From contig JALMLS010000289.1 in the NCBI GenBank assembly GCA_038496445.1, forward strand, positions 62,001 through 126,000: a stretch of DNA of 64,000 nt, given 5' to 3'. Of this stretch, positions 36,312 to 50,100 are shown one piece after another (position 1 is the first letter of the stretch; each line of letters begins with the position of its first letter). Both the position numbers and the translations under genes were made by a program. Under the pieces are notes generated by a model. That model was not told where the DNA came from. It did not search any database and saw nothing but the letters and a program-made list of their open reading frames with translations. Source of the stretch: Trichosphaerium sp. ATCC 40318. Taxonomy: Eukaryota; Protista; Tubulinea.

Positions 36312-38205
36312 TTAGGTCACACTAATCGAGTTTACAGTATCTTCATGAGACTCCATATCAATTGTTAGAGTTGCTTTTGTGGTAATAGAAACAACTTTAC
36401 TAGGTTGAATCATCCACAATTGTAACTAAAGAGTCAAACAATTAGAAAAAAAAGATACATTGTTCTTTTTTTGAATCGTACAAAGTCTAGGACAGTACTA
36501 AGAAAGAAGAAGCTATACCAAACAATGGCATATCCAATAGGAGTATCTGTGACGCCACTAAAAAATAGAACAGAGTACATAATGATACCAAGGAGCCCAA
36601 AAACAAGAACAATCATTCTCCACAATACCTAAATAAGGCAAGTTCAGTTTGTATGCCTTTTTGCTTGTTTCTTTTATGCACCTTCTTAGCTGTTTTTGAA
36701 GCCTTACTTTTTTTAAGACCTGATAACAAGCTTTTTATTACAATAACGGCAATAGCAATAGAATATATAAAAGAGGCAACAATCGTTAATATCTACAAAA
36801 AACTAGATTAGTATTCAACGAAAAGTTGTTTTTTTTTCTTATTGTGGGTTCATTGAATCCTCTTCAAACAGGTTCGTACAATCATTGCTTCTGCTATTGT
36901 GCCAATGAAATCAACGCCAAAATCCATAAAAGCTTCGAGACCTTGAAGTACAAGAGCAAAAACCATAACAATGAAGTATCCGTAGAGACCATATTGGAAC
37001 TTTTTCAAAAAACGTGTCACTCTCCTGTTTTGTTTCATGATGATTTGGTGCCTTAGATCTCATGTTAGTTAAATATCACATTACTAAATCATTGATAACA
37101 TACCAGTACAAGGAAATCAGGAGAGACGCAGCAACACTGCCATAAAAAGTTAACAAAACTATCGTTTTGGTTAATAATAGAAATACGTGCGTGAGAGCAA
37201 TGGAGAGTGTGTAGGCTAGTAGAATTATAGGTGAGGGGTATAGTTTTAAGTAACCCATTGGATCAACACCTTGAGTCATGTTAGAACAGTAGTAACAACT
37301 CGGAAGATAACGCACAATGAAAAACAAGCCGAGTCAGTATTGCCATTATTTCTATTACGATACAAACTGTTGGTACTGTAGCAGCGAAGCAAGTACCATT
37401 TATTTCGGCATTCATATAAAGCCTAGTAACTTGTTAACGTCAAATTCAAGTATGACGAATATCACGTGTACCTGTACAAAGCAAATCCAAAAACCAAAAA
37501 GTTGAAAGCGATTATTGAAACTTGCCAAGCAATGAACCAACCACTCTTGAACATTTCTCTCCACGGGTTATTATCAGGCCACGCGTTCACATATACAATA
37601 TCATTCGATTTAACTAACTCATACGATAGCTCTGACGCCTTAACCTCAGCTACAGGCACCTTTATAAAAGAGTTAAAAAAGTGTAAGAAAAAAGTTTTGT
37701 TTTAGCATCAAATTGGGAAAACAGCATTCTACTTGCTCTGATGTCTTGTTTATCCTTTAATAGGACATATTCTCCGCGTCCAGGGTCATCAGCACGGAAT
37801 ATAACGCCTAAAGCGCCTTTGTTCTGAAACTTTATTATAATTTCTTCTAAACGCTCATCTCTTGTCTCTATGAGTACCAGAGAACCTAAAATACGAATAA
37901 AAATGATCAAACACCGCGTCAGAGCTTCCCAAATCAAAAAAAAAAGACAAACGGCCAAAAGGCAACGTACCTGTTATATTTTGAGAGCTCTCTGGTGTCA
38001 GAGTAACGTTATTGAAGTTCCAATCGATTATATTGTTCGGGTACTGTAGCGGCGCAAGTGACGCAGTTATTGGCTCTGTCGCAAGCATCTCGAGCGAGCA
38101 TTCGCCAGAATAAGCGAATACCGTTATAATCAAGAGCAAACTCAAGAATAACGCCTTTGCATTACTCAATCGAGTGTCAGGTTTTTTGTTGCTGCACGTG
38201 CTCAT
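36312..38205 (-). CDS. Membrane receptor-like protein: signal peptide + PA (protease-associated) domain + about 7 TM helices
   Basis: KFQNKGALGVIF and VPVAEV PA signatures, then NPWREMF and 6-7 hydrophobic helices; stop TAA at 36312-36314. Confidence 0.7.
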
Positions 38206-38471: not shown

Positions 38472-41400
38472 TCATTTTCTGCTTACAAATTGGACTGATT
38501 GCAATTCGCGTAGTGACTTTACAATATGAACGACATGGTTTGTATCGGGGTCAATGATATTTAGAATACTTCCTTCATCTTTGATAATAGACGTCACATT
38601 GTCTGGAACTGTGTTATTATCCAAAATGATAAACTTCACCTTCATTCTGGACAATGCTCTCGTCACCAACTTCTTCTGCATCATGTTTCCAATGAGCAAT
38701 CCGATTAGAATATCTCCATTACAAGGACATAAAGTAATATTGATAACAGTTCCATTTGAGGTTAACATTTGTACACTTGATACAACATTTTCAATATTCA
38801 AATCTACATTATTCAGTTAACATCACAAAGCCCTCTTTTTGTACACAGCGTACCAGGAAATACCGACTTTAAGTATTCAAAACTGTAATCATAAGCTGGA
38901 TGCAAGTAAGAACCTACAATGAGAACTTCTAGGTTATCTGGAACGAAGTCTGACAGCTGAATGACAACTTGGTCATTTCTCCTAAATACAACCTGTCAAC
39001 GAGAAAAATAAGAGACAGCAGATAATAGCGTACATGCCACATGTGATCAAAAGATCTATGTTGTGTGTTGAATTCAAGAACGTGTCAACAGTGTAGACAA
39101 TAACAGATATAAGCGATCGGCGACTAAACATAAAGTGTTAGTTTGTTAACATGATGATTTCAGTACTCTAAACATAAGTGCTGTGGCACATTGTCATGAA
39201 CAACACAACCTATATAAGCGCTATGCGTAGAAGAAAGTATTTCTATAGCTTCTTGAATCACATTCTCTAGACTGACGCTACAGGAACCAAGTTAGCACAA
39301 AGTAGAAGTAAAATAATCAAAAAGTAGTTTTACGTTTTCATAGTGCTAATACTTTCTCTGTCCGTCAATAAACCCTGCCATTGTCGCACTCGCTGTAGTT
39401 TTTCTGTAACATACGTGTTGCCCTTACAAGCTTCAATGACTTCGTCTATAGAGGCTAAAGAAGCTGTAACAACCAATGATGTCAAAGGGTTGCCACTTGA
39501 AATTTGAACACATTCGGTTTCTTGTAAAGTTGGATACAAACGTTTCCAAACATTTGGAAGAGTAACATCAAGGCAAGGAGCATAACGTGATTCAGCAAGC
39601 TAGAAATACCATCAAAAAAAACTCAAGAGGTACTTACGTACCCTCAAATAACCTTCAGCTGACTGTGCCATATCATGAGCAAAGCAGAAGTCAGCTGCTA
39701 TCTTACAAGCAAGTGCAGCAAAGTTCCAAACACCTTCCTCATCTAACATCTTCCTTATCGCCTCGTACTCAACGAGTATGTCCTTTGGAACAATATCTGA
39801 TCTGGACTGACGTAGATTCCATTGGAGATTGCATAGATTAAGTAAAGCTGTGCAAGCCCTACCGAGCTGCCATGTTAAGAGTTGATTAAGTTGTTCCTCC
39901 AATTCTTTTCTAACTTAACTTAACTTTGTTTAAGCAATAATAAAAGCGTCAATCGTACGTATCATCATCGTTCTTTTCCTTGTATGTTGTCTTGTACAGA
40001 AAGTATGCAAACTCACCATACATATGACCGAGCCATCCCCACCATACTGTAAACTCATCAACCTCAGGATGAATTTCTTCCAAAGTTTCAAAATCGTTTC
40101 GTAGGATCAGGTTTACTGTAATAAAATCTACAAATGTCCTCCTACACGTATGCTTAGAACACTTCTCCCAATGCTTGTAAATTACTCCTTACATTCCACG
40201 GTATGGCTCAGGTAGCTTGCAAATTTCTTGAAAAGCTTTCGTGGGTTCTACGCGCCCAGTACGAACTTGTAAAGCATATACTGCACCAGCAATTGTATCA
40301 ATATACCTGTAGTTAAAAGGATAAGCTCTTAGAGCAAAATAAAATCTCATGGTACCCAGGATAACTGATATTCGTTACACGAAACAACTCCTCTGCTTCT
40401 TCCAGTGCGACATCAAGCTGTGCTTTGTCTGTGGTACATAGTAGCTACAAAGGAATAGATTAGCCCAGGAGATAACAAGTATTAGACAAAAACAAATTAC
40501 TATAAGCATGCATAGTTGTTTTGAAGAAATAAAAAAAAATGTTGAGAAGGTTTTGAGAAATGAACTAAAAAACGACTAAATGTTTTGGTTTATCATTCGA
40601 TATCCGGCACAAAAAAAAGTGCTACACAAAGCTATTGGAAAGAAGTTGATTGCAACTATAATTTTGACGTACTCCTTTGAATATCAGGGTACAAAACCGA
40701 ACGAAAAAGATGGTAATAAAGTCACCCTCGCTTGCTGCGAAAATTTCAGCTTTTTTCCAAAGCTCTTCAATGTTTTCTTTGTTTATAACAGGAAAGAAGT
40801 ACAAAACAAGAGTAACAATAGAAGTTGCAACGTTATGCTTGTCAGGTGCACGGAGAACTGTAATCAGCCTCATGGCAGTATCTCTTTGCTTGGCACTGAC
40901 CAAGAAATATATTATTGGTCCAACAAGTGCCTGTCTCTCGCATACAAAGTCATCGTGTTTTAGGGATAACTCTAGAGGAAGACGGATGAGATCCACAAAC
41001 ATTGTATTTTTTTGTACCCAGCAGCGTCAATGAAAAGTAAAAGAAAGGACCTAGAAGTCCCAGGAATTGCGCTAAAAAAGTGAATACTATAAATAACAGC
41101 GTGTATAACCTGCTACGACTGCATAGGCAGTAATTTCTCCGATATCTCTGAACTCTGTATTGTAATTGTTACACTGTCTTTCAAGACGTTCCACAAGCGC
41201 ATCAACGTCTGTGATCAGAGGTAGTATACGATTTTCTAGTTCCTGAGCATCTTTTAGTACTATGTTAGTAACTGCAAACCGTACACGCAGTTCTTTACAA
41301 CCAGGCACAAGTTCTGAAGTAGGTTTGTTTAAATCTATGAGGCCCATAGATTTCATACAATGTCTGGCACTCTCAAGCATTTCCATATATCTGAAAGTGT

Positions 41401-44400
41401 TCCAATGTACCCTTACCTGTACAAAATGTGCCAGTGCCTGCATTTAAGAGTGAATAACAAATGCACCTATATTTCGAAGTACCTTTTGTTCCTTAGTAGT
41501 TGCATGCTTAAATAATGTTTTGAGTGTCTTTTCTGTCCTCTCAGTATCACTAGCTGTTTCCTCTGCACGCGATTATTAGGAGAGGAGATATTTTACACTA
41601 GAACAAAGATGTGGTTACCTAGAAGAGCTTCACATCTGCTCTTTATGACGTGAACTCTCCAAGCAATGTCGTGATCACGTTTCCATATTTTTTCCTCCCC
41701 GAGTAGACTCAGTATATCAGAAGTATACTTCAAGGCGCTACTATTGTTGTAAGCCAAGCTAGCAATGGATGCACCTTTGAAAGAAACTCAGATTCACGTT
41801 ATTGCAGGATATCCTTACCAGCTAGAAGGTGCTCGCTAACAAGCATCTTTTCTTCATCTCTGACACAAGATAGACCTTGACTGAAACTTTCCGCTATCAG
41901 TTGTGCATCTAAACAAGAGGTTAAGACTTTGATTTGAAGCTTGAGAAAAAACCAAGAAATAAAGGTAATAGTGAGTCTTTTCGTACTTGACCGCCTGGCT
42001 TTTTGTGTAAGTGCTATACCGATTTTGTAATGCATTTCTTCTTTATTTACTATCATTCCATAGATTGCAACTTTAACTTGGTTATGAACAAACTTGAAAG
42101 CCTTTCGTTTCTTTCTTCTTGACTTTTCTAAAAAATCATTTTCAATCAATTCAGCGATCAATGGCTTTAAACTCTACAAAAATAAGTATCCGTTATTTCT
42201 ACATAACACCATAAATTTCAAATCGTACAGGTTCAGATGATGACAAAGATATGCTATCAACAGATTTTTTTGAAGTGAGTTTTGCAGCCATCTTTGTGCA
42301 ACCCTCAAGTTTTCCTTTGGTCTGTGTAAAAGTCAATACAGTGAGTTAAAGATTTACCAAACTGTATGAATTACCATCCTGAAATACGGTCGAAGTCGAC
42401 GCATCATTGACATTGTGATATCGCTATGAATGCAACTCGAGAGAAGAAGAAGTTGTAATGCATCTTCACTCAAAAATCTGAGCTTATAAAGAATGATCTT
42501 ACTCTGGAGTATAAGCTTCTTTGTTTTTTCAATCTGGCGTTCTAATTCTTCACCTGATAGATCTTTGTTTGCATAGGGTTCAAATTGTTTCTCTATTTCT
42601 TGTATAAGTCGCTATAGAAGAGGTGCAGGTAGTGTAGTAGGTACCTGAATCCAAAAATGAGATGATTTTATTGATATGAAATGCATTCCCTTTTGTGATG
42701 TCCAGTAGTAGAGAAGCCAGCTTCTCAACGTTATATATATTACTGCAGTTATTATTGAGCCAAGAAGTAATGCATTCTATACTAAGACTACTTATTTCTA
42801 TCTCCTTCACTTCAGAGATAGCCATCTTGGTAATATTGTTAATCATATTCTACAATTTAGTAAACATTCTTTCAGTAGTTTTGTTTGTGTACTCTGTGTT
42901 TCGGATGTAGTTCCCCAGACCTATAAGTAGCTGCAACAAGAAGATTTGATACTGATTCAGAAGTCAGCAACATCTCTAGAAGAGTTAAACTGTTTCTATC
43001 AGCCCAATGAAGATCATCCAGAACAAGAATCTATCATAAAAATAAACATAAGGAAAGAATATAAACGAACTACTGCATACCATACGGCGACCACCTTCAG
43101 ACAATAACCTGAAAAGCATTACAATAACACCTGAAAGTTGTTTAGGATCTTCTATAGCTCGTTCTCTGCTCGTAGATACAACCTAAGTGTACGATATTAG
43201 CTACGTCATAAAAGTGCTATCTGATAACACGTGCCTTTCCAATAAGCTTAGAAAATAGCGGTAGAATAGAACATAACTGTGATAACGAATCTTTTGGCAT
43301 ACGAGCAAGCAATAACGATTTTACCCTCGTCAATTCAAAGTGTGATTCTTTATCAATCATGGTTTCAATGATATCAGTGATAGCACTCAAGATTGGTCCA
43401 AAAGTTGTAGTATCTCCTCTGTTCCACTTTCCAAAGCCACTACCACCGTTTTCTGACACGTAATCTACTACACGCCTTATGAACATCGACTTTCCAGCTC
43501 CGGATTCAGCTGACAATACCACAAACAAATTTCTTCTGTTTACAATATCTGCAATGTTTGTAACAGCATGCAATGCCATTTCCTCCCTATCGAATTATGG
43601 TTTAGTATTAGCTTTACTCGAACCGAACCTTCCGTATAATACATATCTATCACTCTTTGATTTACTGTCACTATAGATAGGTAGCTTATGTTTCATCTCA
43701 TCTGTGACGATAAGATTTGCAATGACTCTGTAGAGCATTGAAATTATTTCTTCGAAATTCGGACGCTCTTTTTCATCAGTTGCCCAGCAGACTTTTTTGT
43801 GAGAAGGAAAAGGTCAGGTTATGTAATTTCAACATTTGCTTACCTTTGATCAAGTCTTGTAGCCTTTCATTTGTACAATTAGATAGTGGAGGACGCTCGC
43901 CGCTTAGAAGCTGCTGTTGGGATACTAATCTACCGAAGGGAGCTTGGTGTGCAAGCATTTCCCATAACGTAATACCATACGAATACACGTCAGCTTTGAC
44001 CGTGTAATCCTGACTTGTATACACTTCAGGAGCCATATAAGGGACAGTGCCTGTCAATTGTGTATGCAACACTTCTGATGCATTTACTGAAGTTCCAAAA
44101 TCTACATTTAAAAACATGAAATAAGAACGTAGGTTCTTTGTTGTTAACGTTGTTCGTACCAGTTAATTTTATGCTAGGATTCCCAGCATAGCTTTTTAAA
44201 GATGTAACTAGAATGTTATCTAAGAAACATTAGATAGTCTATCTTGTGGGACGTGCATTGTTAATACCAGGCTTCAGATCACGGTACAAAATAGGGCAAG
44301 GTTCATCATTTAGTCGAAAAGTATGCAAGTATTGCATGGCTGCACTCAGTTAAAAGTAACGATTTCACAACTGCTTGTACCTTTTGCTATGTCTAAGGCT

Positions 44401-46669
44401 ATTGATATATAAGACTTCCAATTATCAAGAGGACTTGGCCTAAGTGTATGGATCAGTATATCAAATTGTGAATTTAAAGCTAACTTAGAATGAATGATAT
44501 CCCAAAGCGATCCTAGCTCAACAAATGGAACCAAAATGCACATAGAGGAGCCTTCCATACATGCACCAACTAAGATGGTATTAATTTAGATGTAATTTAA
44601 ATAAGCATGTGTGCATACGCATGTCAATGATACAAGGATGAGATAATTTTCCCAACATAGATACTTCTCTTTGGAACTCTGACAAATATTCTTGATCTTG
44701 GTAATGCTTCACAGCAACTACTTGCCCTTTATATTTGGCTTTTACAACATTTGCCGGACCACCTCTATCTAATAATGGTGTCAACATAAATAAACGAGGG
44801 TTACACAGTACGCACTTATAGTAACAATGTCATCGTATTCGTCTTTTTCAAAAATTATATCCTTAAATCTGACCGTGTATTGAGTTGTTGTGCTAGAAGT
44901 ATGGATCCTATTTGATATCGCTCGGAACCTCATTCATATTTTTAGAATAATATAAGATTATGTACTTTACTTACCACATCTGGCTGTCTTTGTGAGTTTT
45001 ACAAACGAGCGTTAAAGTGGATTTTGCAATAGTTAACACCAAAGCTGGCTTATTTTTGAAGTTTGTATTTTTTATCTTTGTTGTTTCTGTGATCTGGTAA
45101 CTGGCTCCAACAATCTGCATCTAGATGTAATGTGTTATTCGCATTAGTACATAAACGATAATATACCTTTGCATCTTCATAAGAATGGAGAACGCTGCCA
45201 CGCAACTCAAAGTAATACTTTGTACGTTCGCTTTTAAACAAAACTGATTTTTTCACAACCGTCATGAAACCCGCACATACTACCCCGCCAATAGCTACGT
45301 TCTTTCTCCCCGCCTTCTTAGACAACTTGGCTGTATCCACCCATAATTTTGAGAGTATTAAGGTGCTTTCATCTTTCTGTAAGACTAACAACATATTGCT
45401 TGAAGCAACTATTTTGACAATGAGGTTCTTGCTTTTAAAAGTCTTGATCGGAGTTTCTTGATCACGCTCTTGTTGATTATAAATCACAATCTTGTCATTG
45501 TTAAAGCTACAACCCAACATATCATCTGGTAGCAACACAAGTGCAGACACTAGAGTCAAGTCAAAACAAACAGTGTAGCAAGTGTAAAATGAGTTTTTCG
45601 TCTAGAAAAAAAATAGAACAAAATATTTCAGGGAGCTGTACTGGTAGTGGTTTACCTCTAGTGGAAAGCTGTGTGAGCAGCCCAGCGTTTTCATTTATTT
45701 CTACTTTGTTGACATTGAACAACAGCTTTACAGCAGTGAGACTGTACGCTTTTATCTTCCCATGTAAATCACCAATGTATAAAATAGTGCCACGAACAGC
45801 CATAGAAGTAGGTGCAGCGTCAAGCTGAACATCATATGAAAAGGAAGAAGAACCACTATGGCTCACATAAAGTGTGCTTGAAGAAGCACAAATGACGTAA
45901 TTACCTACGACCTTCATTAAAAAACAAAACTCCCAAAATTCCAAGAAATTTCATATTGTGAAATGACAAGTTGCGTGAGCTGTGAGGCTGTGAGGTTGTA
46001 CCATGAATTCTTGTAAAGAGTAAAACGTCATCACCAGAGACTATTGTGATCACTTTCCCTGTATTCAAGTTAACACATACCATTTTATTACTATGTGCTA
46101 TCAGAAGCTTTTCTTCTTTTAGAATAGAAACACTATCATCCACCAAAGTTAACGGGATTCTAACGTCTTTTTGTAGCGTCAAAGCGCCAGTATCATAGTC
46201 TAGGTTATATGCGGATTTCGAAGCGTCAATAACAATGCATCTGATCTCATTTGGGATGACCTGGAAGAAGGTTAATCAAAACTTGCTCTAAAATAAACAA
46301 ATCTGTCTCATACAGCCAATATTCTTTCATCCTTAATCGATGCGCCTTCAGATAGCTCCTCGGTTTCGATATTGTATACATAAACAACGTCTTTTTCTGC
46401 CTTGTCTTTTGTAAGCGCTATAATATATGGCCATACGCATTTTGCACGCGAAACAACGGCAGGGAACTGTATTATTCGTTCCTTGCTATTTTCGTTTGCC
46501 GATATCAGTACAACTCTTGGCAAAACCATCAGAACACGTTAAAACTGCTAAATTACTTTGTAGATTTGTTATAGCATGATAAAAAGTAGTTGGGTTCTAC
46601 AAATGCCGTGGCGCTTCGGGAGTAAACTTTACCGCCTAAATAAGGTTCTATTGTTGAAATTATATCCAT
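38472..46669 (-). CDS. Large multidomain signalling protein: beta-propeller, PH, TKL kinase, STAND/AAA_16 NTPase, TPR-like helical region, degenerate HisKA/HATPase, receiver-like tail
   Basis: VAVK, YRDLKPDN, DFG and GTVPYMAPE kinase motifs; SAESGAGKS Walker A; LVLDDLHWAD Walker B; TKGNAFH; FKFVHNQV; NPLTSL and NGTVINITL histidine-kinase remnants. Confidence 0.8.
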
Positions 46670-47138
46670 TTCTTCATCAATGGCGAGTGTTCTGAGTTGT
46701 AGCGTTGCCAATTACTAAATTGTTTGAGTTAATTAAGTTAACCTCGAAGGAGAATCTAGCATACTTTCCTGAAACAGCAGTAATTTTATGAACTTTAAAC
46801 ATACGGCATTCACCCAATAAATCCACGTACTCAAAGTGAGCTACATACAAACTCTTGAACATACTTCTATGGAGTGTCAACCGCACAAACACATTTCTCA
46901 GACTTATATTACAAATGTTGCTAATGTTCATACTACTACATGGAAATAGTTGTAAAGAATATTGTGTACTGAATATGGTGACGTTGCACGTTACAACAGT
47001 GTACCTTCACAAATAGAAAAGAAATAGAAAGCGAAGAAATTTGGTCAACTTTGTTTGTACATTGGGTTTTAAAATTTATTATTTTTTTTTGCGCAATTAA
47101 AAAAAAGTTCTTAAAGGGTTTTCTCATTTTGGCTGCCC

Positions 47139-50100
47139 TTATGGCTTCATTGCAACTGTCCATTTTACAAGTCTTTTCAATCCAACCATAAGTTTAGAAC
47201 CAAACTGACGGTAATGTGCTTTTGAAAACTCTGCCCACGAGGCGTTTGCACCGTCATAATTACCAGAATGTATAAGATTTATAAAATTAAGCAAAGCAAC
47301 CTCTTGAGGGTCTGCATAAGCATTTGCTTGAAGTTTCTTTGCAAGTTCGTTAAACCTAGAAGCAACATCTGATATATCTTTATCTGCTTGACCACCCTAG
47401 ATTACAATGTAAGCGAAACAAGAAGAGAAAAAAATTGAAAGAAAATACAAAAAAAAATACGTACTGTTTTGGCCTTGCACTTATTTAAAACCTCTCTACA
47501 CTTAGCTAATATCTCCTTTCCTTTTGCTGTAATTTTTATCACCTTCTTTGGTGGAGGTGCTGCTTTAGGTTCAGGACGTTTTGGTGCTGCTGCTGCAGGT
47601 CCTGGAGCTCTCTATCAAAAAAGTTAGAACTGTAGAAAATAAAACTTGATCATACATTTCCTCGAACTTGAGTGACAGGAGGTGGTCCAACAGCACCTGG
47701 ACGCGCTACTTGGCGGTTAGGAGCACCTGGACGAAAGCCAGTGTTAGCTTGCATGCCTGGTCCCCTATTTAATGGTGCTCCAGGTCCACCCATAACTGGT
47801 GCTCCTGGTCCACCCATTGTAGGTGGTCCACCCATAATATTAGGTGTCATTGCGGCCATGCCTGGCCCCATGTTTAATGGTGCTCCAGGTCCACCCATAA
47901 CAGGTGCTCCTGGTCCGCCCATAACAGGTGCTCCTGGTCCACCCATTGTAGGTGGTGCCCCTGGTCCAAGAGGATCTAGTACATAGTTAATAGAGAATTA
48001 AAAGAGTAGGTTGTAAAAAAAACTTGTACCCATCATATTCATTGCTTGTGGTGGACCCACCGTAGGCTGAGGACCGGGTGTTTTGTTAATTCTTGGTTGA
48101 GTATTCTGGGGCGTGAGTCCTGGGGTTTCAGGCATACTCCTTGGTCCCGATCGCTTAACTCTTCGCTTCACTTTCGAGTTCGATTTTGGTGGAGGCGCAA
48201 CAGCTCGGGCCTTACCACCATATACAGGCGGTGGCCTACGATCAAGTGGCCCTGGTCCACCGACTTGAGGAGCGGCCGCTTGTACCATGTTATTTCCAGG
48301 TGTAAACGCACCAGGTACAGCACCAGACATACCACCTACAAAAAAGTAAACCACAACTCAAAAAAAAAATGGTAAAAGGTCTTTCCGTACCAGGTACATT
48401 ACCACCAGGTGCTACTATACCAGGCGGTGCTACTGGTCTATATCCATGTGTAGTCGCAGGAGCAGGTCCATTGCTATAAGTAGGCGTAGGTACCATACCA
48501 GGTCCACCAGGTCCCATGGTAGGTGTAACAGGAGAAACGACTCCTGGGTGCATCGGAGTTGTTACAGGTTGAACTGGTGGCATCCCATTTGAGTAACCTG
48601 AAGGTTGATAACCTGGCGTATAACTCGTTGCAGGTATGGTAGAAACAGCAGGACCTGGGCTACCATATCCAGCATATCCACCACGGTTAGGTGTGTTTGG
48701 CTGTGTGAATCCTGTAGCACCTCCGCGCTTTGGTCTGGACCTTGTATTGCTACGTTGTGATACTCCAGAAGCAGTTGGTACTGTGGAATTTTCTGTTGTG
48801 AATGGGAAAGCTGGTGGACTCTGTTTGAGACCAAGAGCGTTGTAAACACGATCAAGAAGTACACCACCTTCTGTTTTTGTGAATTTTGGGTCTCTCATAT
48901 GCTCCAAGTACGGCATAGCTGCTTGAAGCCTTCCTTGAGATGCCAAGATCTTGGCATATCTTTAAGAGAGTAAGTATACGTCATTTTAAACGAATTGGAA
49001 CGCACTCTGTGTATTTTGAAGCAAGAAGAGAAGAAACTTCTGTAGGTGCATTAGCATGAGTTAATATCTCCACACGCTCAATTAAATCTTGTAGATCATC
49101 CAACGGGTTAACTGATCGTTTCTTTTCCTTTTTTTTAAAAGTTAGATAAGGACGCATTGCGTAGTTAAGTCAATAAACGACAAAACGAAAAAAACAGAAC
49201 ACTTTGAAGCATGCGTACTTTTTGAAGCCAAAACTCAATAGCTTTGTCATTTTTACGTGCACATATATAACACGTCAAGGCATTGTAAAAATTACCAGTT
49301 TTATCTTGTGATAGGCGATCTCCTAGAGTCTCACATAGCTCAGCAGCTTCTTCTGGTGTTGCATAGCAAATAAATGTAGCAAGTGCTTGCCGCCAATATT
49401 TTAGCTCTACATCTGCAGCAATACGCTTAAAGTCATTGTTTACAATAGCAGAAACTAATGTCATAAAAGGTCTCTTTTTACGTTGTGCTTTGAGGTAGCT
49501 CGCCTGAGAAAACGTCAGATTTGATCCTATACTCTTTTTTTTCACAATGTACCTGCGCTAGGTTCCATAATGAAGCGTCTGGCGATGCCTTAGCAATAAC
49601 CAATGCATCCGCATAACGTCCTACGCGAAAGCAAGCCTCTACAGCACCACGTAGGTTACCAACCATCAAAGATCTTCAAAACAAGTTAGAAAAGTAATTA
49701 AACTATTAATGAATACCTTGCTATAGCTGTTTCAATCTTATCAGCACTTTCAAACCTCATAGGCGTTGATTTTCTCTTTTTAATTTTTGTTGGTGTCTGT
49801 AGTTGTTCCATAGTATCAAAAGCAGATGTTTCGCCTTCTTCACCAATACCAAAACCATCTGACGCTGTTTTTAAACAGAATAAGCAACAAAAAAAAACAT
49901 GAAGAATGAACAAAAAAATCGACTTTTTGTTTACCTGACACTGCTTCTTTAACTGGCTCTTCGTACTCTTCTTCATCTTCAGGATTCTCCAAAAGACCTT
50001 CTCCAGGGTACTTAGATAGAAATTTTGTAACTTCCTCAGCGACTTTATCAGGTGCAAACCCAAGGTATTTCATTAAATGATCTCTATTTTCTTCTGCATC

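Follow-up and report, generated by a model that had tools for sequence, protein, structure and literature searches.

The minus-strand gene between ~46540 and 38472 of the window (the stretch of 64,000 nucleotides of DNA analyzed here) is predicted to encode a giant signaling protein with a catalytically dead tail. At the level of sequence, our analysis establishes the order of the domains, a homology with the dual kinases that extends as far as the motif preceding the GAF domain, and the absence of catalytic residues from the tail. On balance, the tail is probably the decayed ATPase (CA) and receiver output of a dual-kinase ancestor, in which the GAF domain has been lost, the hairpin is no longer recognizable, and the Ser/Thr kinase has taken over the output. 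A decayed two-component output had already been proposed in the initial annotation of this region. The collinear dual-kinase ancestry, the receiver-like end, and the loss of residues agree with that proposal; the H-box on which it also relied scores at chance level, and the ATPase is only suggestive.

Overall organization of the gene

The gene has many exons, and the parts of the predicted protein follow each other in the order propeller-like, PH-like, Ser/Thr kinase, AAA_16 STAND ATPase, helical arm, and tail (Table 1). The exons of the tail were modeled with GT-AG introns, which measure 42–56 nt in the kinase gene. In addition to the kinase core, Pfam Pkinase matches 44584–44829 (E 4.5e-4), and VAVK and YRDLKP are read directly in the exons upstream of the core. 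By direct reading, the motifs of both the kinase (VAVK, YRDLKP, DFG, and APE) and the P-loop ATPase (GAGKS and LVLDDLHW) are intact. A profile scan of the genome, a eukaryotic assembly of 70.3 Mb in 642 contigs with ~38% G+C, identifies AAA_16 at this gene with E 4.5e-10.

For exon E4, the donor at 38854, which leaves an intron of 50 nt, was preferred over the alternative at 38914 (110 nt). The first ~25 residues of E5 possibly represent the last helix and strands of CA, and the remainder of the exon is a truncated receiver-like stretch. This copy of E5 stops ~30 residues before that of the C27 paralog. A hidden extra 3′ exon, with GTAAGC at ~38486 as its candidate donor, was ruled out: the alignment with the C27 copy continues through the terminal VSRK, and the start of the next gene at 38205 leaves no room for missing receiver exons.

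This downstream neighbor (37855–38205, minus strand) starts 267 nt past the stop codon of the kinase gene and has a signal-peptide-like N-terminus. On the other side, at 47000–50000 of the minus strand, a long Pro/Gly/Met-rich repeat region is found together with helical N-terminal exons; by eye, this upstream neighbor looks like a Sec31-type coat protein.

Table 1. Features of the kinase gene in the window and location of its two paralogs
Feature	Position	Strand	Evidence
N-terminal propeller-like and PH-like exons (putative), first kinase exons	44242..46538	-	ORF pieces; tblastn collinear with C27 paralog
Ser/Thr (TKL-like) kinase core, with DFG and APE	43598..44162	-	Pfam Pkinase E 3.9e-14
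AAA_16 STAND-type NTPase, Walker A GAGKS, Walker B LVLDDLHW	42875..43594	-	Pfam AAA_16 E 4.9e-5 and 2.9e-6, two exons
Helical arm 3′ of the ATPase, last exon E0 (~39909-39642)	39642..42849	-	Dual-kinase HMM matches
Exon E1, with the proposed H-box string QISSGNPLTSL	39334..39599	-	Sequence reading
Exon E2, possible first helix and strand of a dead CA domain	39167..39277	-	
Exon E3, proposed N-box-like helix without Asn; LxxxxVY(T/M) common to three paralogs	39034..39123	-	Block alignment
Exon E4, strand followed by DFVPD at the G1 place	38854..38981	-	tblastn to C27 paralog E 4.5e-4; block alignment
Last exon E5, including stop (TGA 38474-38472)	38472..38803	-	Receiver HMM, block comparisons
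C27 paralog, collinear with the window gene	G000:C27 ~240000-248440 (L043 4000-10000, L046 1-3436)		
C24 paralog, more distant	G000:C24 ~289000-297640 (L045 5000-10000, L049 1-4633)		

Two divergent paralogs in the same genome

Two divergent paralogs share the order of propeller-like part, kinase, AAA_16, helical part, and tail. In tblastn comparisons of pieces, identity drops along the protein, from ~54% in the kinase core to ~40% in the ATPase and 26–30% in the last exons that align; BLASTP of the final exons gives no alignment between the window gene and the C27 copy. Of all parts of the protein, the tail differs most between the paralogs. A few motifs are nevertheless common to the three tails, namely LxxxxVY, IQxxDFxP, and a CP before a hydrophobic strand. 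The second of these, located in exon E4, is kept in all three copies as IQ(L/F/M)(S/T)(D/N)F.P in the block alignment.

Among the three copies, the end of the C24 gene most resembles a receiver, and two additional small exons precede its tail. The intron that follows its pre-GAF exon (L049:3033-3088) shows an apparent GC-AG splice, with the donor GCAAGT read by eye. One of its small exons (L049:3253-3342) encodes an N-box-like string, LFNNALDML, that matches the N-box helix of the dual-kinase CA profile with P 0.0025. This exon sits upstream of a CA-start-like exon and hence out of order, and the match could be due either to chance or to a rearrangement.

Relationship to dual kinases

The reference profile comprises 17 cyanobacterial ORFs of 1800–2400 residues, a type described as dual protein kinases (PMC2176072). 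Pfam identifies Pkinase, AAA_16, GAF, HisKA, and HATPase_c in the 4 of these 17 ORFs to which it was applied, and Response_reg in some of them. The kinase core of the window gene matches columns 175–219 of the dual-kinase HMM (E 2e-8) and the ATPase, at its Walker B motif, columns 465–510 (E 1.6e-11). The helical arm follows in order, with matches to columns 514–577 (E 1.8e-4), 684–735 (E 1.8e-6), and 774–820 (E 0.003). Exon E0 is placed on columns 1248–1284 (E 0.27), which correspond to the motif just before GAF; in the C24 paralog, this pre-GAF motif is matched with E 0.013. The C27 paralog shows matches in the same order up to column 810. The window gene contains the dual-kinase succession of Pkinase, AAA_16, and helical arm, and gives no matches to any of the GAF, HisKA, and HATPase_c domains that complete it in a working form. 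Descent from the dual-kinase family, or from a common ancestor with the Pkinase-AAA_16-arm layout, appears well supported by these placements up to the pre-GAF motif.

Cyanobacterial dual kinases (cbSTKIII; HstK and Pkn40/Pkn41 of Anabaena) likewise have a Ser/Thr kinase followed directly by AAA_16 and a long helical arm. The hybrid members of this family carry a receiver at the end, and the end of the window protein is receiver-like. In contrast to the cyanobacterial proteins, the window gene is eukaryotic, with many introns and an extra propeller-like and PH-like front, and its product is devoid of GAF, of recognizable HisKA and HATPase_c, and of the catalytic His, Asn, and Gly residues. Its receiver-like part is truncated and has no acidic pocket.

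Mycobacterial PknK-type proteins also combine a Ser/Thr kinase with an AAA_16 switch and a helical arm, in the order Pkinase-AAA_16-helical and without an HK, and end in a helical or TPR-like part. Compared with these proteins, the window gene adds an alpha/beta tail of ~300 residues with receiver-like features.

The same domain order is found in a eukaryotic setting in the fungal group X hybrid HKs (e.g., Candida Chk1), and kinases with this topology are also reported from Amoebozoa (Kabbara et al., PMC6324907). The Ser/Thr kinase portion of group X proteins is termed ‘kinase-related’ and the HK is the working output, whereas the window gene seems to be the reverse. The proposed link of the window gene to group X is one of architecture only.

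In the cyanobacterial genomes G001–G005 (L073, L056, L099, L065, and L080), four of the five have 11–31 AAA_16 matches each and the fifth has 2, and almost all of these matches are within dual-kinase-type ORFs of 1800–2400 residues. Per genome, the dual kinases of those cyanobacteria form a paralog family of very large size.

Two-component signaling is native to the genome of the window gene, since ~10 ordinary hybrid HKs, whose H, N, and G boxes are normal, are present in it. No AAA_16 match in the genome is located beside any of these ~10 canonical loci. One hybrid HK locus is observed three times with identical scores (G000:C250:53407-55274, C338:16836-18704, and C83:280-2133), which may represent assembly duplicates or recent copies.

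Missing catalytic residues in the tail

All the strings that the initial annotation had aligned with two-component motifs are found on the minus strand in the last five exons (39599–38472). The proposed H-box, QISSGNPLTSL, occupies 39506–39474, a few bases off the end coordinate given at the time. Its lack of a His is borne out, and exon E1 as a whole contains none; its likeness to an H-box or DHp is not, as it remains at the level of chance (p 0.3–0.8). The further absences noted in the annotation are borne out as well. At the place of the N-box Asn the sequence reads Y..T, DFVPD occupies the G1 place with no Gly-rich G2, and I-G replaces the acidic pair of the receiver pocket. Pfam GAF is blank on the exons of the window gene and of its paralogs.

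With respect to the individual families, HisKA/DHp (PF00512) has no Pfam match and no phospho-acceptor His in E1. HATPase_c (PF02518) has no Pfam match either, and the registers of the chain described below read Y/T, DFVPD, and no Gly run in place of its boxes. For Response_reg (PF00072), beta5 and its Lys are missing in addition to the acidic pair, because exon E5 ends after the fourth strand-like stretch. An Asp is found near the acceptor place of the receiver in E5, by eye only. Lacking a His in E1, Gly-rich boxes, and an acidic pair, which reads I-G in the register of the receiver HMM match, the tail can be regarded as catalytically dead whatever its ancestry.

Profile and database searches

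Pfam HisKA, HATPase_c, Response_reg, and GAF give no match on the C-terminal exons of the window gene at E<=1, and none on the exons of the C27 and C24 paralogs at E<=10. Genome-wide scans with the two-component families and GAF leave the locus untouched, and exon-by-exon HMMER searches against the full generic HK-core and dual-kinase profiles return no single C-terminal exon with significance. When the C27 exons are scanned against the genome, they match nothing but themselves. A word search with the last exon yields no match, with long proteins outside its length range, and neither does one with a canonical kinase exon from the same genome. No lead was obtained from the ESM Atlas with the last exon as query, and nothing relevant from a PDB sequence search with three exons. 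A large HMMER search with the AAA exon retrieves only a tandem-repeat junk protein (P0001) and no close relative in the library.

A receiver-like end

The exons of the tail were tested singly against three profiles, one built from the cores of 68 bacterial hybrid kinases, one from the dual-kinase C-terminus, and one from 71 receivers. The best match of the receiver HMM in the window gene coincides exactly with the string that had been proposed as receiver alpha1, with residues 41–62 of E5 on REC columns 16–37 (P 0.033). The same HMM matches the corresponding sites of the two paralogs with P 0.03 and 0.0013, and the combined P across the three paralogs is ~1e-4 (Fisher’s method). Comparison of the window and C27 block with REC results in an hhalign P of 0.0095 and a column-shuffle p of 0.002. 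These matches lend moderate support to a putative receiver remnant at the end of the gene.

ATPase, hairpin, and GAF

A collinear chain of ungapped diagonals places exons E2, E4, and E5 on CA at the registers of the initial annotation, with E3 four columns off; taken individually, E3 receives no support from the profiles. The chain scores 46.4, against a maximum of 43.0 in 42 control windows of the profile (0/42 reach it), and has p ~0.008 with respect to real-ORF decoys of the same genome. It also exceeds 200–500 shuffles (z 3.7–4). The p-values from the shuffles were not taken as evidence, since the chain statistic over-calls: the chain of the three-paralog block is equaled on an unrelated control window in the protein-kinase part (z 3.9). 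With a CA-only sub-profile, the first CA helix is matched with P 0.009 in E2 of the window gene and P 0.0016 in the C24 paralog. The distance from E0 to the receiver-like strand is ~226 residues, near the length of DHp and CA together (~230–240).

The C27 and C24 paralogs alone show no CA chain signal, and the generic HK-core profile reaches z values of only 0.5–2.6. The hhalign placements are weak and locate E4 on GAF alpha5 and E2 on receiver beta1; for E4, a kinase placement is obtained as well. In some tests, GAF-like and even protein-kinase placements scored comparably to CA. Given that a control window equals the block score, that the paralogs alone are blank, and that the generic core gives such low z values, a CA remnant in E2–E5 is only suggested.

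Against the generic and dual-kinase DHp profiles, E1 remains at chance level (p 0.17–0.8), as it does against the pre-GAF linker, and the H-box reading of QISSGNPLTSL is not supported. An NPLT-like string recurs in the paralogs, at 22, 51, and 58 residues from the next conserved block, a spacing too variable for a conserved hairpin. The stretch that precedes the CA and receiver remnants may or may not be the old dimerization hairpin.

AlphaFold models of the single last exons have pLDDT values of 42 (window) and 46 (C27), too low to inform on the fold. The Foldseek matches of the C27 model, an endonuclease and H-NOX, are unrelated and were disregarded.

Alternative origins of the tail

In an alternative view, the dual-kinase ancestor's GAF region gave rise to the tail, or the latter is an alpha/beta domain of unrelated origin, and in either case a receiver-like piece follows. 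The HK look of E1–E4 would be a fortuitous pattern of amphipathic helices and beta-hairpins. E1 would then directly follow the pre-GAF motif, and no deletion of 235 residues would be needed. However, only ~100 residues are available, compared with ~140–160 in a GAF domain. Within the dual-kinase profile, hhalign prefers the last GAF helix for E4, and E2 and E4 of the window gene fall at the expected GAF registers with E3 nearby (z 1.6); yet the window exons reach only z 0.3–1.6 on GAF, where no domain is detected, versus 3.8–4.2 on CA. That control windows show comparable chains by chance speaks in favor of such an origin. So does the C27 copy, in which one exon matches the GAF-start signature and the chain over linker and GAF has z 3.4–3.6. 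The reversed window sequence, however, scores as high as this copy on the Ser/Thr-rich linker, so that composition drives part of the linker signal. Pfam GAF, moreover, is blank. By eye, a helix, a turn, and two strands seem to precede the receiver-like strand in the three paralogs, as at the end of CA; low-confidence AlphaFold models of this segment show strands in the window copy and helices in the C27 copy. Taken together, we consider a GAF-derived or unrelated domain unlikely.

Still less likely, in our assessment, is that the tail evolves fast and is lineage-specific or partly disordered, with no surviving domain and all profile signals being noise, or that the 3′ gene model is wrong. The failure of the last exons of the window and C27 copies to align by BLASTP would fit such a tail, as would the C27-exon genome scans that return only themselves, the low AlphaFold confidence, the lack of database relatives in the word and large HMMER searches, and the early end of the window copy. 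On the other hand, the exons of the three paralogs remain open, are comparable in size and order, and have motifs in common, and receiver matches occur at one homologous site in 3/3 paralogs, with the combined P of ~1e-4. The C24 segment, in addition, lies far above 56/56 control windows. The remains of CA and a receiver are the origin that we favor for the tail.

Discussion

From the architecture and the residues of the tail, we infer a history in which the window gene would encode a large cytoplasmic signaling protein derived from the dual-kinase family (kinase, AAA_16, helical arm, GAF, and HK with or without receiver). In the amoeba lineage, propeller-like and PH-like parts would have been gained at the front and GAF lost. 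The HK and receiver output would have decayed, leaving the last ~300 residues most likely as remains of CA and receiver. Such a tail would be unfit for phosphorelay, as it has no His, no Asn or Gly boxes for Mg-ATP, and no acidic pocket, and its receiver-like part is cut short. With the tail dead, signaling would have to run through the intact-looking Ser/Thr kinase, under the control of the intact-looking P-loop switch. This rerouting through the kinase, already envisaged in the initial annotation, is plausible because the motifs of both the kinase and the P-loop are intact.

The annotation had also suggested that the fold was kept as a dimerization or sensor module. Given the poor conservation of the tail and the truncation of its receiver-like part, decay seems to fit at least as well, and we lean towards it. 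The tail would be no more than an appendage with a structural or autoinhibitory function, or it may simply be decaying. A variant that we put forward only tentatively, as somewhat unlikely, is that the three paralogs form an amoebozoan family with an inverted dual-kinase design, in which the kinase and STAND parts would signal, the propeller and PH parts would provide the input, and the dead HK-receiver part would be kept as a regulatory or oligomerization scaffold. Such a scaffold, too diverged for family profiles to recognize, would amount to a pseudo-two-component module within an NLR-like kinase of a eukaryote.

Loss of the residues for phosphotransfer is also observed in DivL of Caulobacter (PMC4211667), in bacterial pseudo-receivers (PMC12632262), and in FrzS (PMC1974792), and where such pseudo-HKs and pseudo-receivers have been studied they act as binding or scaffold modules (PMC4211667, PMC12632262, PMC1974792). 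These proteins are still recognized by their family profiles and their folds have been solved, whereas the tail of the window protein is invisible to Pfam. A more general lesson comes from the placements on GAF and on the protein kinase, which about equal the matches to H, N, and G boxes made by eye; such calls should be accepted only once a fold or deeper alignments back them.

Pseudo-HKs and pseudo-receivers (PMC4211667, PMC12632262) and the dual-kinase design are already known. The novelty would lie in their joining, in a eukaryote, to propeller and PH parts and in a two-component module that is almost completely erased. If our favored reading is true, the tail would be a far-diverged addition to the known pseudo-HKs and pseudo-receivers. 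It would mean that a bacterial-type phosphorelay output has lost all of its chemistry within a eukaryotic STAND kinase while the remainder of the protein stayed intact, and the loss of GAF and the gain of the propeller and PH parts would be dated within one amoeba lineage.
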